Positions 41,001-47,000 of a DNA stretch of 64,000 nt are shown piece by piece. The stretch covers positions 13,640,001 through 13,704,000 of the forward strand of contig OZ281498.1 in assembly GCA_965637545.1 (NCBI GenBank). The letters run 5' to 3'. The stretch comes from Phallusia mammillata (taxonomy: Eukaryota). The notes under the pieces were generated by a model. The model was not told the origin of the DNA. It saw only the letters and a list, made by a program, of their open reading frames with translations, and did not search any database. Made by a program: the position numbers and the translations under genes. How positions within the stretch are numbered: the first letter of the stretch is position 1; each line of letters starts with the position of its first letter.

Positions 41001-44000
41001 CTTGCAGTGTAATACCAAAACCTAGTGAAAACAAAAGTTAAAACCAGACAAATTACCTCGCTGTCCAGGAAATCCAATATCACCGGCTTCTCCTGGTTCG
41101 CCACGAATTCCCGGCTCTCCCGTTTCGCCAGGTAAGTCTCGACCATTCAGACCGGGAGCTCCACTTGGACCAGTGTTACCAGTTTCACCAGGAGGACCTT
41201 GTAAACCGGGCCCACCGATTTCTCCTTTCTGTCCTTTCTGGCCAAATTCCCCATCAATTCCACTTCTAAAATCGAGGTTTAGAAAAGAAAATGTAAATAA
41301 GAACTTATCACAACAAGTGCAACATTAAGCAGCCAAAACACAGTCCAAAAAACGAATGTTATACCTTCCAGGAGGACCATTGAAACCGGGGCTCCCAGGT
41401 GGACCAGTAGGACCAGTTAGACCTCGTGCACCTTTGCTCCTAATGATTGTTAGTTCTCCCACTTCTCCTTTAGGTCCAGGAGCGCCAATCATGCCTTGCA
41501 GTCCAGGTCGTCCCTAAGCACAGTATTAAACAAAAATATTTACTTTTACCACCAAAGTTAACTTTTGTAGCATCATTGCCATCACTTCACCCAGTAATTT
41601 GTTACAGTATATTCGCCGTTACTTCTTTGTTCTGTTTACCTGTTCGCCAGTAAGTCCAGCAAAACCGGCAAATCCCTTTTGACCCTTTTCGCCTGGAGTT
41701 CCTTGTATACCCATTTCACCATGTCTTCCAGGCTCTCCTGTCTGCCCGATTTCGCCCCGTTCGCCCGGTGGTCCCTGTTCACAAAGTCCGCATTCTTCAC
41801 CTTTTATACCCTTTAGTCCTTGCTCGCCTAAAAAGTAGAAAAGGTTAACATTTTATTACTTCCTTTTTGTAATATTAACACAAAGCTAAGACGCCATGTG
41901 GCCAACTTAAACATACCGATCGTTCCAGGTTGCCCTGGTGAACCTGGCGTTCCTCGGGGTCCAGGTAAACCGGTATCTCCTGGAGTGACCATTTCCTTCA
42001 TGTCGTCACTTGTGATAAAGGCATCAAGTCCTGGTTCTCCTTTTGGTCCTTCTGGGCCTGGTTCACCAGGCCGTCCATTTTGTCCAGATCGGCCGTCTTC
42101 TCCTGGTGGACCTGTGACAGTTGCTCCTTGACTACCCTTTTCTCCGGCTGGTCCCGGTGGACCTTGAAAGCCATGACGACCAGGCAAGCCTAAAACGCGA
42201 ATATTTAGGTGTGGAAAATACAATTTCTTTCGTTTAATGTTTACCTGGCTTTCCAGATGGTCCAGGCTCCCCAGGCTGGCCGTCAAGCCCAAAGCCTGGC
42301 TGACCTGGTGGTCCTTGTTCACCCTGGGGACCTGGCAAACCAGCTTCACCCTTGATTCCATTGAGACCATTCATACCAGGAAAGCCCATCCCACCCTTAG
42401 GGCCAGGGCGGCCACGTTCACCAGGAGGACCTGTTTCACCAGAGCGCCCATTTTCACCCTGCAACAAAACAGATTTAAGTGGTTAAATCCTATTTTTGCA
42501 ATGGCATAGGATATAGTCAAACAACAAGCTACCGTCAACCCTGGTGGTCCAGGAGGTCCACTAATTCCTAACTCTCCTTTGGTTCCCTTTCCACCATTTG
42601 ATCCTGGATAGCCTTGAAAACCTCTGGAACCTTTTTCACCCTAAAAAGTATTGTAAAGTGGCATTACATTACAATCACAAATTTTTCTACAAAAAAAACA
42701 CAGACTAACAGGCAATCCATTGGTTCCTGGAGTACCCGGTTTTCCGACTTTTGTACTCTGCAAAAATTGACAGTTTTAACAAAATGATTGTGTGTTTTTC
42801 AGCTTTAGTTTTATATGGTAACAAACCTGAGGCCCAACAGGCCCACGCTCTCCTTTGCCACCTTTTTGCCCCTTAATGCCGGTTGCACCCTTTACAAAAG
42901 TAAGTGGTTACATACTTTCAGGTGGTAAATATTATTTCAAGAGAAACCAAAAATGTAGATTACTTACAGGGTCGCCAGTTTCTCCTCGGTAACCCTTTTC
43001 GCCAACTTCTCCCTTTTCACCCTTCAAAAGCATTAATTTAGATATCACCAAATTTAACTCCAAGTTATGGTTTAAGAATCACTTACGGGTCGGCCATCTG
43101 GACCTGGTGGACCCTGAAAATGAATCACATAAAGTTAGAGCAATTATAATTTCTGCTTTAAAACACAGCTCTTGTCTCTGTTTAATCTTAAAGAGTACTT
43201 TATTTTAGTTTTATGGATTTTTTTATTGATTTAATCTTTTATACTACAAACAAAATCAAAACATGATACAAACAAACCCCAAAGTTTGCCAAGAAAAATT
43301 AGAAAAAAAAGTTTTATTGTTCTTTTGAAACAACTAGTTGACTAGTTGTTCCCTTCCTCATATTTACCTGTCATGAAATTCATTTTTGCCCACTTACTTG
43401 TGGTTGGGTAATTTCACCCTGTGGAGGTCCACTACTTTCTTCAATACCTCCTGGGGGTCCAGGAATACCAGAATCTCCCTATTTGTTCGCACATAACATC
43501 AATGACCAAAGCAAATGTGCAAACAACAGAAACACAATTACTGACACTCTTGCCACAAAACATTTGTGGTACATTTTGCATGTAAATATTTGTAATTCAA
43601 AAATTTCTTTCAGACAGACAGAAAAAAATAATAATAATAATTTGTAAGAAAAAATTAGAGTGTCAGCATAGAAAGGTGTGTTTCTGTATGTTTTTACCCA
43701 CAGCAGAAACTGATCAATTTGGAATGAATAAGCCATCAAAATGAACCAATTACTGCTGTGGTTTAAAAAATACAAACCAGGTTGTCATTTCATCTTTTCC
43801 ATCTATTAGGTCTGTTTATAAGTTTGTCTTTGGGGTTTGTTTGCACATGCATATTAAGCTAGCATACAAAAGCCAGTTCACAGTTCACCCACAATGAAAT
43901 TTTCAATCCGGCCAGTTTGTGCATCTAGTTCTCCTGATCCTCCAGAGCTGCCTGCCAGACCTTGTTCGCCCTTCATTTTAAGCCATGCACAGAAGCAGCA

Positions 44001-47000
44001 GTATTTGCAGAAGCACAGGCAAACAAGGAAAGAAAACAACAACAAAGCCAATTAAACATGTTTTACTGTAAACTTACTGAATAATAAAAAGATATTTCAT
44101 TTAAATCATAAACAGTAATGGCGGAAAAGAACCAACAGACAAATTAAACAAAATGATTTTCATTTGCATAAAATTGTTTTGCAATACAAAGCAATAAATC
44201 AGATGAATTAAAGCATTGCTGTGAATGAAAGAATGTAGTGTATTATTGCCCATGATTAAGGAAAATATTTTTCACAGTATTGTTATTTATTAGGCACCAT
44301 TTAACACATGCAATAACATTCAATAAAATTTATTTAAGATGCATCTCTATACAATGAGGATAATGTGAAAATAGTTCAGCCAAAACAAACCCCAAATACC
44401 ATACATCTTAAGAAAAGTAATGACAATCTGTTTTGTTCACATCATATGTACAAAAATTAAAAAATGGGCTATTGGTAATAGATGTATATTATTAATAATA
44501 AAAAAAACATACCTTTTCTCCTTTTGCTCCTTGATATCCAACACCCATTTGACCCTGAAGGAACATATTTTATGAGGGATGTTCTCAATAAAATTAGGAA
44601 CATTAATAGTATATTTTCTATTTTATTTAAGATTAAAGCCAATAATTAGATTTCTATGGCATTAATGCCATATTTCTGCAGGCAGACAAACATACCCACT
44701 AAGAAATTTTGTTTTATTAAACATACCCAAAGCCAAAAAAATGTTATATTTCACAATAATTCTAGAACTTGACAACTTATATAGTGACATATAGTGAGCA
44801 ATCATTATGGCTGATGCATTTACTACTTTTATAAACAAACAATGTAATACTTTGGTCAAGTTGTGGAAAAAAATAAAAATAAAACAATCCCCCCAGAAAA
44901 TTGATCAAAACTAATAAAAAGAATGTTGTCAAAAATAAACTTACCTTTTCTCCAGACATGCCACGGGGACCAGGTTGACCCTAAAAACAAAGCATTTTTT
45001 AGCAAAAAATGTACAGAATTTAATCAAAAGTAATCAAGAATACATACAGGTGGTCCAGGTCTTCCATAGGGACCTTGTGGCCCAGGCAGCCCCATTTCAC
45101 CCTGCAGACCCTACCAAAAACAATAAAAAAACATGAAAGCTTCTCTGTCTACTAAAACGAAAAAAATAAAATACAGGAAAACTATACCTGTGGACCAGGC
45201 TTTCCGTCTTGGCCTGGTTCGCCTTTCTTGCCAGGCACGAGATTAATAACCTCACCAGGCTCACCCTGTCAACAAACAAGCCCAAAACATTTAACTCAAA
45301 AATACATATTAAAAAAATTACTTACCTTCATTCCTCGACCACCAGCTTTTCCAGGTCGACCACCAGCACCTTCGATTCCTGCAGGCCCAATTGGTCCCTT
45401 TTCACCCTGCAAACACAAAAGTTTAATTCACCCCTTTAGTTGTAAACATTATATGATAAAGTATTTTACCTTTGTACCGTTACATCCAGGGATACCTTGT
45501 TCTCCAGGTGGTCCCATTTGACCAGGTATACCCTAAAAGGTACAATAGATTATTTTACTGTCCAACAGATAATTATGTTGTTGCTTTTTATTTAACATAT
45601 TTACAAAAATATTTAACAAAAAAAAGAAAACAAATGCAAATTAACTTACTGGGATTCCAGGTGTTCCAGGATAGCCATGGGAGCCTTGAGAACCCTAAAG
45701 TAAAGTTATTTTAAGCAGGCTAAATGTGAAAAAAGTGTTTCTAATATCACTACTTACCCTTTCTCCTTTCATGCCTTGTTCCCCATCTTGACCAGTTTCA
45801 CCCTAAAAGAAACATAAATATAAAATGAAACAACACTGACAGTAATTGTTTATCATAAAACTGCTTACCACTGGCCCTCTGGGTCCAGGTGGACCCTCGG
45901 GTCCAGGAAATCCAGGAAGACCAGGTGGTCCATCCATTCCAGGATGTCCTCTAACTCCCTAAAATATACACTGGCTTTAGATAAGAGATTTTGTTTTCAG
46001 GCAAAAGGAACATACCCTATCTCCTTTGGAAGCATTGCAATATACTTTAGGTCCACCACAACCTCCATAACCTCCATACTTCGCAGACTAAAAAATAATA
46101 ATGTTAAAAATTAAACTAAAAAAATGAATCTTATCAAAAGCAATAAGTTGTTTCAAAAGACCTTTCAAACAGACTTCCGACACAGGGAAATACCCTAATG
46201 TGTAAAACAATCTGTAAACAAAGATTTATTTCTGAACAAGTCACCTGCTTAACATAAAAATCATTAAAATGTTTTATCTTCTTGAAAGTTTAACTGAATT
46301 AATTTGTCTTGAGTTTTGTTATCGATTACTTTACAATATAAAAAAAAACTTCGATGTTTTTTAATTGGTTTTAAATATATTTTTAGTGCCATTGCAATGA
46401 TAAGTGTGCCCACTTTTGCTAAACATATTCTAACAGGTGACGCAATTGCCATTTATACATCTTTGAATGGTTTGTGACTTTTACGGTGCAGGCATCCGCA
46501 TGTAACTACAAATTACCCTCAACTAGACCCAGATTTTACAAGCATCCTCAAACGTCACGACTAAAGTAGCCATTATTTATCGATAATCATGTTTAATTGA
46601 CCGGGTGTGGTGCTTATTCACACATGTAAATGTCAGCTAATCAACAACTTGTTTCCTGGCTATCTGTCGAACAGTCGCGTCTGGCGATTGCAACACAAAG
46701 GAGACATTGAACTTTCTCCTTCGGATTCGCACGAATCTATCTAACCGCCGACGTCTGGTTGGGCGTCCACCCAAATTAAACAAACGACAACCTACAATCA
46801 AAGTGTGGGTAAGGCCAACGTAGCTATTTCCTGATGATATGAGAAATACAATATGGCGATAACCAAGCTGTCGCCAAATGTAGCGCATAAAAATGGAAAA
46901 CTAATAACAGCATTGGTGAACTATAATTGTGGAACAATTTCCACCATTTAAAGTGTAATTAATGACATTAGTGTTGTCGCACAAATAGATGCGAATCCGA

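Follow-up and report, generated by a model that had tools for sequence, protein, structure and literature searches.

Gene structure and the duplicated exons

The window, by which we mean the whole 64-kb stretch of DNA analysed here, carries on its minus strand a collagen IV gene whose collagenous exons are spread across 41–46 kb, with 5' exons extending to 46.1 kb. A second collagen IV gene lies head-to-head with it, its collagenous open reading frames running on the plus strand from about 57.9 kb onwards. All basement membranes are built on a scaffold of collagen IV, whose flexibility and binding sites are set by the interruptions in the triple helix. In the minus-strand gene a long interrupted Gly-X-Y domain is followed by two tandem C4 (NC1) repeats, and Pfam C4 matches four NC1 exon pieces spanning both repeats at 54–59 bits against a cut-off of 27. 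One NC1 exon scored 89.3 bits with alpha1, 84.7 with alpha5, 80.4 with alpha2 and 74.2 with alpha4, and by this modest margin the gene appears nearer to the alpha1/3/5 than to the alpha2/4/6 chains. A preliminary description of the sequence had named it an alpha1 collagen IV gene, and the NC1 scores together with Pfam C4 support that identity as alpha1-like.

This gene holds two alternative exons, 12a and 12b, between constitutive exons 11 and 13 (the junction positions of exon 11 carry a 1-nt cut ambiguity):

44513..44554, minus strand: constitutive exon 11, 42 nt; junctions 44512/43969 and 44553/44944 in all four RNA runs
43893..43970, minus strand: alternative exon 12a, 78 nt, phase 0/0; included in the dominant contig in each of the four runs
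43398..43478, minus strand: alternative exon 12b, 81 nt, phase 0/0; skipped in the dominant contigs; type conserved in relative 1 (see below)
43087..43113, minus strand: constitutive exon 13, 27 nt, encoding GPPGPDGRP; junctions 43112/43892 and 43020/43086 in all four runs

The coordinates, sequences and phases first given for 12a and 12b all hold, as does their layout of Gly-X-Y triplets, GG and an interruption. Both encode three GXY triplets, GG, 8–9 non-collagenous residues and then G-x-I, and they would be tandem-duplicated exons offering two versions of one triple-helix interruption; no third exon copy was found in the introns around them. RNA contig junctions agree with the exons upstream (63, 36 and 42 nt) and downstream (27 and 54 nt). 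The introns flanking and separating the pair are unusually long, as had been remarked earlier: they measure 542, 414 and 284 nt, against 55–126 nt in 12 of the 13 other introns measured, the thirteenth being 390 nt. The donor of 12a (GTGGGT) is weak, and the nearest AG upstream of its acceptor lies about 100 nt away, which leaves a long AG-free zone; 12b combines a GTAAGT donor with an acceptor region that is weak and rich in purines.

Exon use in RNA

Contigs from all four RNA runs join 11-12a-13 with 12b skipped, and because this is the dominant transcript in each of them, 12a and 12b are not both constitutive. Of the splice paths that the preliminary description had envisaged, 11-12a-13 was therefore borne out, with 12a included, and 11-12b-13 did not appear among the joints listed for these four runs; a joint between 12a and 12b was likewise absent among the 15 joints listed. 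Exon 12b went undetected in two of the four runs. Run X12 shows excess depth over it, with about 2530 depth-nt in its bin unaccounted for. In run X1 one contig, covered about three times as deeply as the remaining intron contigs, stops exactly at the 12b acceptor. Unspliced contigs are restricted to the three introns around the pair, and none covers the upstream 390-nt intron. From the excess depth in X12 and two joints outside those listed, we infer that some stage or tissue makes use of 12b.

The same data could be read to mean that 12b is nearly retired, 12a having taken over after the duplication so that 12b is skipped almost everywhere and no regulated switch exists. The skipping of 12b in every dominant contig and its absence from two runs would fit such a history. 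Looking up the exact 12b reading frame returned no record, and protein searches gave no match either for the peptide spliced from 11-12b-13-14 or for two exons nearby, a result of little weight, since full-length collagens fall outside the length window of these searches and they are blind to such proteins. The contig ending at the 12b acceptor and the excess depth over 12b argue the other way, and so does the state of the exon in other species.

Conservation in relatives

Long ENA contigs of three other species were reached through a search with the NC1 exon, which returned mostly exon-sized fragments. A fourth, closer relative is represented by a 2.9-kb Logan contig (L001) that ends short of the region, and one further candidate for comparison (L005) was dropped when it proved to be alpha2-like. 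Relative 1, a divergent species whose introns are beyond alignment with those of the window, has intact exons of both types. Orthologous exons of the two species have 13–17 residues in common, against 6–11 for cross-type pairs, and the 12a ortholog of relative 1 has the same GTGGGT donor. The pair is thus real and conserved, and 12a and 12b are homologous alternative exons.

Exon 12b is intact in frame, in length and at its two splice sites, in the window as well as in relative 1, despite the unalignable introns, its divergence (14 of 27 residues identical) is similar to that of constitutive exon 11 (7 of 14), and the sole exon at this position in species 3 is of the 12b type. With these observations beside the RNA signals over 12b, we regard the near-retirement of this exon as quite improbable. 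Since two further relatives, species 3 among them, have a single exon at the 12a/12b position, the duplication appears on sequence comparison to be confined to a subgroup of ascidians and to have arisen independently of the duplicated exons of the nematode collagen gene let-2.

Three complementary intronic sites

The introns around the pair contain three short sites, here called U, M and D:

44376..44400, minus strand: U, upstream selector-like site; 14-bp perfect core pairing with M
43827..43850, minus strand: M, central docking-like site, A/C-rich; pairs with both U and D
43261..43285, minus strand: D, downstream selector-like site; core 43284-43269; 23-bp helix with M

In the pre-mRNA the U core (44396-44383) reads UUUGGGGUUUGUUU and lies 116 nt past the exon 11 donor and 413 nt ahead of exon 12a. 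The M core (43843-43828) reads CAAACAAACCCCAAAG and lies 50 nt past the 12a donor and 350 nt ahead of the 12b acceptor, and D is placed 114 nt past the 12b donor and about 150 nt ahead of exon 13. It had been proposed that M is complementary to a site upstream of 12a over 14 bp and to a site downstream of 12b over 16 bp, extendable with G-U pairs, and this proved correct. The M/D arms are 16 nt long and 100% complementary, and the M/U arms are 17 nt long and 94% complementary; with G-U pairs and one bulge, M and D form 23 bp (43850-43828 with 43261-43284). The same M core (43842-43829) serves both pairings, and the arms are spaced by 540 and 543 nt.

The complementarity of the three sites is far beyond chance. 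The word TTTGGGGTTTGTTT, allowing at most one mismatch, has three copies in 64 kb, at 44396-44383 (minus), 43829-43842 (plus) and 43283-43270 (minus), against a chance expectation of 0.18, and none of 100 shuffles reached three; these 14 nt are exact at all three sites, in sense at U and D and as the complement at M. A statistic for shared docking was matched by 0 of 60 shuffles by score and by 0 of 80 by energy. When the whole window was scanned for perfect inverted repeats of at least 14 nt within 1.5 kb, this was the only one to qualify.

Short, nearly perfect arms at a regular spacing of 540/543 nt are also what inverted-repeat elements look like, and the three sites could be remnants of a mobile element (terminal inverted repeats or copies of a MITE) or of a local inversion-duplication, with no role in RNA. 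We consider such an origin very improbable as the whole account. The inverted pairs enclose 12a and 12b, and because these exons are older than the divergence from relative 1, what lies between the arms is not an inserted transposon. No target-site duplications accompany the sites, there is no similarity beyond the cores in their flanks, and no other copy exists in the 64 kb even with one mismatch. As the flanks are unrelated, U, M and D are not parts of a larger repeat, and transposon origin was ruled out as a sufficient explanation on the flanks, the ancient enclosed exons and the lack of another copy together. A repeat origin of the sites would in any case not exclude a function.

The comparison of orthologous introns, which the preliminary description had put forward, gave a divided answer: both exon types are kept in relative 1, the sole relative with both, and the three elements are not detectably conserved there, the M region of this distant species being unalignable. 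One candidate triple in relative 1, in which U and D would share TGGTTGTGTAG and M would be its complement, lies at a distance from the 12a donor similar to that in the window. It was the best shared-docking triple of that species at -22.9 kcal/mol, and it was dropped, as 12 of 80 shuffles reached this value and the fold prefers a local hairpin for the candidate segment.

Predicted folding and the proposed switch

RNAduplex applied to whole introns produced meaningless kilobase "duplexes" and was replaced by windowed scans and shuffles. In these scans the M-D duplex reaches -34.3 to -35.6 kcal/mol, against -20.0 for the next best inter-intron duplex, and the M-U duplex comes to -24.2 to -25.1 kcal/mol, the next best match of M with the introns reaching -17.2. 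The fold of the region, also proposed earlier, came out in favour of the switch: within the roughness of fold predictions at kilobase scale, the M-U pair probability is 0.93 while D is untranscribed, the M-D pair probability is 0.955 in the full fold after D is made, and the two forced states lie 1.6 kcal/mol apart. The prediction for the three sites is therefore a two-state switch close to balance. U itself pairs with a local partner in the minimum-energy fold of the full-length region, and this predicted hairpin could mask it:

44416..44435, minus strand: predicted local partner of U, A/C-rich

No Rfam family was found at threshold in the region.

In the proposed mechanism, M would pair either with G/U-rich U, upstream of 12a, or with the identical D, downstream of 12b. 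Pairing of M with U would loop out 12a and bring the donor of exon 11 closer to the acceptor of 12b, whereas pairing with D would loop out 12b and bring the donor of 12a closer to the acceptor of exon 13. Because M can hold only one partner, at most one exon would be looped out at once. During transcription M-U could form first, and once D is transcribed the stronger M-D helix would take over, so that 12a is predicted as the default isoform, in agreement with the RNA. Whether this competition governs the choice between 12a and 12b seems to us evenly poised; the formation of the pairings in vivo and their driving of exon choice are conclusions that we draw from the model. Of the switch as originally claimed, the alternative exons and the complementarity stood, and the near-balanced fold and 12a as default agree with it; what fell short is the use of 12b, which is indirect, and the conservation of the elements in relative 1. 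The RNA switch is in this sense plausible, and the exon pair is well supported.

A different reading is suggested by a motif beside exon 12a, which we take to be the classic Rbfox-type motif:

43984..43989, minus strand: UGCAUG motif, 19 nt upstream of exon 12a

Further copies lie at 43851-43846, inside the extended M helix, and at 44312-44307, and three of the five sense-strand copies of the 11-kb gene fall in this 1.5-kb region; in relative 1 the 12a exon is preceded by copies at 24 and 54 nt. The choice might then depend on the strength of the splice sites and on RNA-binding proteins (e.g., Rbfox-type or muscleblind-type), and the complementary sites would be a lineage-specific accident with little or no effect on splicing. 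A conserved UGCAUG next to 12a suggests that protein factors could make the choice without RNA pairing, both exons are weak-sited and 12a has its long AG-free zone, and relative 1 has kept the exon pair and not, detectably, the RNA elements. In let-2 the exon choice is set by a protein factor. The let-2 pair is a collagen IV precedent for a switch of this kind (PMC2119826). Against such a reading stands a perfect 14-mer present three times, in the sole topology that allows competition and never reached by shuffles, and the unrelated flanks of the sites mean that no simple duplication accounts for the pattern. Proteins alone also leave the absence of double inclusion unexplained, since the frame tolerates both exons. 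Reading frame or NMD was ruled out as the enforcer of exclusivity because both exon lengths are multiples of three, steric hindrance because the intervening intron is 414 nt (190 nt in relative 1), and incompatible spliceosomes because both donors are GT-type. On balance we find it unlikely that proteins and site strength decide by themselves.

Comparison with known systems

Competing RNA pairing as proposed here has its closest established parallel in exons 7a and 7b of human and mouse ATE1, where the competition of R1 and R4 for R3 was demonstrated experimentally (PMC7797038). In both cases there are two homologous exons, mutually exclusive in ATE1 and predicted to be so here; the central element (R3, corresponding to M) lies in the intron between them and is complementary to two near-identical competitors, and one pairing loops out the upstream exon, or at the present locus would do so (PMC7797038). 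Sensitivity to co-transcriptional folding was shown for ATE1 and is predicted here (PMC7797038). The two differ in layout: R4 lies just upstream of 7b, and R3-R4 forms a local hairpin, whereas D lies downstream of 12b, so that each pairing would loop out one exon in a symmetric arrangement. ATE1 also has a 30-kb R2-R5 helix, and its elements are conserved across vertebrates and were tested by mutation, while the pairing at the present locus is predicted from sequence and folding (PMC7797038).

The docking/selector systems of insects (Dscam1 clusters, 14-3-3xi, Mhc and the srp bidirectional model; PMC4691838; PMC6071210) resemble the locus, where the pairings are predicted, in having exclusive pairings of one docking element with several selectors within the introns of tandem-duplicated exons, and weak splice sites on the variable exons. 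In those systems the docking site stands at one end of the cluster with a selector beside each variant, whereas at the present locus the common element stands in the middle with a selector on either side of the cluster, and the host is a tunicate, unlike the arthropods in which docking and selector sites are known. The nearest parallel in product is C. elegans let-2, an alpha2(IV) gene whose exons 9 and 10 are mutually exclusive and differ mainly in a 9–10-residue Gly-X-Y interruption (PMC2119826). Both are collagen IV exon pairs encoding similar products, with one isoform strongly dominant in each sample type. The let-2 gene is alpha2-like and the ascidian gene alpha1-like, and the ascidian pair is not of the same lineage and the same duplication as exons 9 and 10. 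The locus is probably a further case of the known class of mutually exclusive splicing by competing RNA structures, parallel to let-2. The mechanism class itself is well known; the novelty earlier claimed for collagen IV stands insofar as no such mechanism for a collagen IV gene was found in the literature searched.

Implications for collagen IV

If the pairing were irrelevant, the conserved exon pair would still be a useful addition to the annotation. A fuller picture, which we put forward tentatively and rate as somewhat doubtful, is that of a chordate basement-membrane collagen with a near-isoenergetic three-site switch, made of a central docking site and outer selectors, in which either helix would exclude one exon by looping it out. 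With M-U forming first and M-D later, the sequence of transcription would tie the isoform ratio to the kinetics of elongation and splicing, and the whole would be an independent reinvention of the let-2 switch by a different mechanism. If true, it would give splicing biology a competing-structure switch, symmetric and compact at 1.1 kb, from a chordate that is neither insect nor vertebrate, and with its perfect, easily mutated helices it would serve as a convenient model of the way in which RNA folding keeps exons mutually exclusive. In the literature searched, regulated isoforms at one collagen IV interruption were found only for nematode let-2, and a second case, of separate origin and in a tunicate, would point to the swapping of interruptions as a recurrent way of tuning basement membranes.

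The exon pair and its use

Two tandem C4 (NC1) repeats, scoring slightly higher as alpha1 and alpha5 chains than as alpha2 and alpha4, form the end of the minus-strand collagen IV gene. Its exons up to and including exon 11 measure 90, 45, 45, 63, 81, 78, 63, 36, and 42 nt, and the alternative small exons 12a and 12b follow before exon 13.

Exons around the alternative pair (window coordinates)
44554-44513, minus strand: exon 11, 42 nt, followed by a 542-nt intron
43970-43893, minus strand: exon 12a, 78 nt, phase 0/0, followed by a 414-nt intron
43478-43398, minus strand: exon 12b, 81 nt, phase 0/0, followed by a 284-nt intron
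43113-43087, minus strand: exon 13, 27 nt, with a 54-nt exon next

Both 12a and 12b encode three Gly-X-Y triplets, GG, 8–9 non-collagenous residues, G-x-I and a short tail. The other introns of the gene are 55–126 nt long in 12 of the 13 measured, and 390 nt in one. The 12a–12b intron also holds an imperfect hairpin (43685-43774; 39-nt arms, 77% complementary, 12-nt loop) that weakly resembles a microRNA precursor model, below threshold (28.7 bits, where the gathering score is 63). On the plus strand, at about 57850-64000, a second collagen IV gene is arranged head-to-head with the first, and no duplicated exon pair was seen among its first exons. Between both genes, at about 53200-53700, is an array of tandem repeats (period ~145–158 bp) with a repeated open reading frame, GSKFTWTIFRPI...

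RNA evidence came from the Logan contigs of four runs, which belong to three studies. In each run, a contig of high depth passes from exon 13 into 12a (junction 43112/43892) and on into exon 11 (43969/44512), leaving out 12b; constitutive inclusion of both exons is thus excluded, and 12a is the default. The alternative junction series 11-12b-13, which the preliminary description had also called for, was absent among the 15 of 22 joints listed; by the exon map five of the remainder are constitutive and two are unaccounted for, as many as a 12b isoform would need, so that their link to 12b is inferred. In run X12, the bin holding 12b has ~2530 depth-nt unexplained by the listed contigs, equivalent to ~31x if it came from the 81-nt exon 12b, against ~92x for 12a. 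Unexplained depth and unaccounted joints together point indirectly to use of 12b. No spliced contig over 12b was seen in X5 and X11. In X1, an unspliced contig (42992-43478, depth 20.8, ~3x that of other intron contigs) spans part of exon 14, an intron, exon 13, an intron, and exon 12b, and its end coincides exactly with the 12b acceptor. This contig may represent a transcript that contains 12b and retains an intron, with an in-frame stop five codons into the retained intron. Unspliced contigs (5–21x) occur in all three introns around the pair and none in the 390-nt intron just upstream, which fits slow, regulated splicing at the pair.

The exon pair in relatives

Long ENA contigs from three other species, reached by NC1 exon search, all fit a tunicate-like collagen IV. 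In relative 1 (L002-L004; NC1 pieces 74–89% identical), whose introns do not align with the window, the orthologs of exons 11 and 13 enclose two intact exons: one of the 12a type (78 nt), whose unusual GTGGGT donor is that of 12a in the window, and, 190 nt downstream, one of the 12b type (81 nt), whose donor is GTAAGT. Orthologous exons have 13–17 residues in common, and cross-type pairs 6–11. In species 3 (L006/L007) the only exon here is of the 12b type, and species 4 (L008-L010) has a single, very divergent one; the pair therefore arose when an exon was duplicated in some subgroup of these animals, and that both copies were long kept argues for use of both. The pair is genuine and conserved, and its exons are used alternatively, 12a by default and 12b on indirect evidence.

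In species 3, the intron after the 12b-type exon (L007 2502-3242) has several motif copies in both orientations, like GAGGAC within AAAGGAGGACA, which resemble a small inverted-repeat element. An alpha2-like collagen IV gene (L005; ENA ERZ25067582 ctg12245), with the NC1 signature RNDKSYWLST...PMMPV, adjoins a kinesin (MKLP1-type) gene; it is in the same assembly as the alpha1-like gene of species 4, at different coverage.

Three complementary intron elements

Allowing at most one mismatch, the word TTTGGGGTTTGTTT has three occurrences across the 64-kb window, all of them around the exon pair; 0.18 are expected by chance, and none of 100 shuffles reached three.

Complementary elements (window coordinates)
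44396-44383, minus strand: U, upstream of 12a, TTTGGGGTTTGTTT in pre-mRNA sense
43829-43842, plus strand: M, between 12a and 12b, complement of TTTGGGGTTTGTTT in the pre-mRNA
43283-43270, minus strand: D, downstream of 12b, TTTGGGGTTTGTTT in pre-mRNA sense

A repeat search gave perfect 16-nt arms for M/D (543 nt between) and 17-nt arms at 94% for M/U (540 nt between). As isolated duplexes, M-D has -35.6 kcal/mol and M-U -25.1 kcal/mol. When the middle intron was compared window by window with either outer intron, both stood far above the next best (-34.3 vs. -20.0 and -24.2 vs. -17.2, respectively). When single middle-intron segments were scored for pairing with both outer introns, the shared-docking score of 34 exceeded the highest value among the shuffles (31; 0/60), and the energy of -24.9 lay below every shuffle (mean -16.1, minimum -22.0; 0/80). 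Because the 120-nt surroundings of the three sites have no further similarity, and the region has no tandem repeats and no Rfam family above threshold, the complementarity is short, isolated and three-fold, outside any larger repeat. It is statistically solid, and the exon pair with its coordinates, phases, shared layout and three-fold word is as the preliminary description had observed.

Predicted folding

That description went further, proposing that M pairs with either U or D and loops out 12a or 12b. In RNA reaching just past M, or to the end of 12b, where D is not yet made, the predicted mean pair probability of M-U is 0.93; from exon 11 to exon 13 it falls to 0.04, with M-D at 0.955. The minimum-energy fold of this whole region contains an M-D helix of 23 bp (16 Watson-Crick, G-U, U-A, one bulge and five more pairs), and U is predicted to pair locally, as a hairpin, with A/C-rich sequence lying 20 nt upstream. 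Forced M-U and M-D folds differ by 1.6 kcal/mol (-366.7 vs. -368.3), although such 1.5-kb predictions are only indicative. The pattern is that expected of a two-state switch, and in silico the complementarity acts as one, its stable M-D state agreeing with the observed 12a isoform; a switch function in splicing is an unproven proposal.

Conservation of the elements, a check that the description suggested, was not detected in relative 1, where the M regions do not align. The best middle-intron segment pairing with both outer introns lies 31–48 nt after the 12a donor (M in the window, ~42–66 nt) and its partners have an 11-mer in common, but its energy of -22.9 kcal/mol was matched by 12/80 shuffles, its simple score equals the null mean, and it prefers a local hairpin in the fold. 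Since this relative is so distant, with outer introns of 2.7 and 1.0 kb, the comparison neither confirms nor refutes conservation. A closer relative (L001, 89% identity in the NC1 exon) offers only a 2.9-kb contig elsewhere in the gene.

Possible protein control and other routes to exclusivity

Choice of 12a or 12b by a protein is a serious rival of the RNA-pairing model, or a partner to it. The sense strand of the 11-kb gene has five copies of UGCAUG, which we take to be an Rbfox-type motif; three are clustered around 12a, and the motif recurs just upstream of 12a in relative 1.

UGCAUG copies
43984-43989, minus strand: 19 nt before 12a
43846-43851, minus strand: inside the extended M-D helix
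44307-44312, minus strand: upstream intron
L003 179-184 and 209-214: 24 and 54 nt before 12a of relative 1

Given the copy within the helix, pairing and protein binding could compete. Other routes to exclusivity are ruled out: frame-based, as both exons are multiples of three; steric, as the intervening intron is long (414 nt); and spliceosome-type, as both donors are GT-type.

Relation to known systems

Mutually exclusive splicing by competing intronic pairings is established in insect Dscam1, 14-3-3xi, Mhc, and srp (PMC4691838; PMC6071210). The closest known system is mammalian ATE1, where two similar elements, R1 and R4, compete for a central R3 (PMC7797038), as U and D would for M; unlike in ATE1, the second competitor of the ascidian gene, D, lies beyond the downstream exon, so that one exon would be looped out by each helix. 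In the account of Ivanov and Pervouchine (PMC6071210), such systems originate when one arm of a stem is duplicated together with the exon, whereas here the outer sites are direct copies, the central one is inverted and the distances from the exons are non-equivalent, a layout with no simple derivation from one tandem duplication. At the protein level there is a parallel in C. elegans let-2, in which the difference between exons 9 and 10 is chiefly an interruption of 9–10 residues and the two are developmentally switched (PMC2119826); let-2 is alpha2-like and its duplication unrelated to that of 12a/12b. For collagen IV of tunicates or vertebrates, no report of alternative exons or of RNA switches was found in the literature, of which coverage was incomplete, in line with the preliminary description; this is weak evidence of novelty. 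The competing-pairing mechanism belongs to a class already known, to which the collagen IV gene would probably be an addition.
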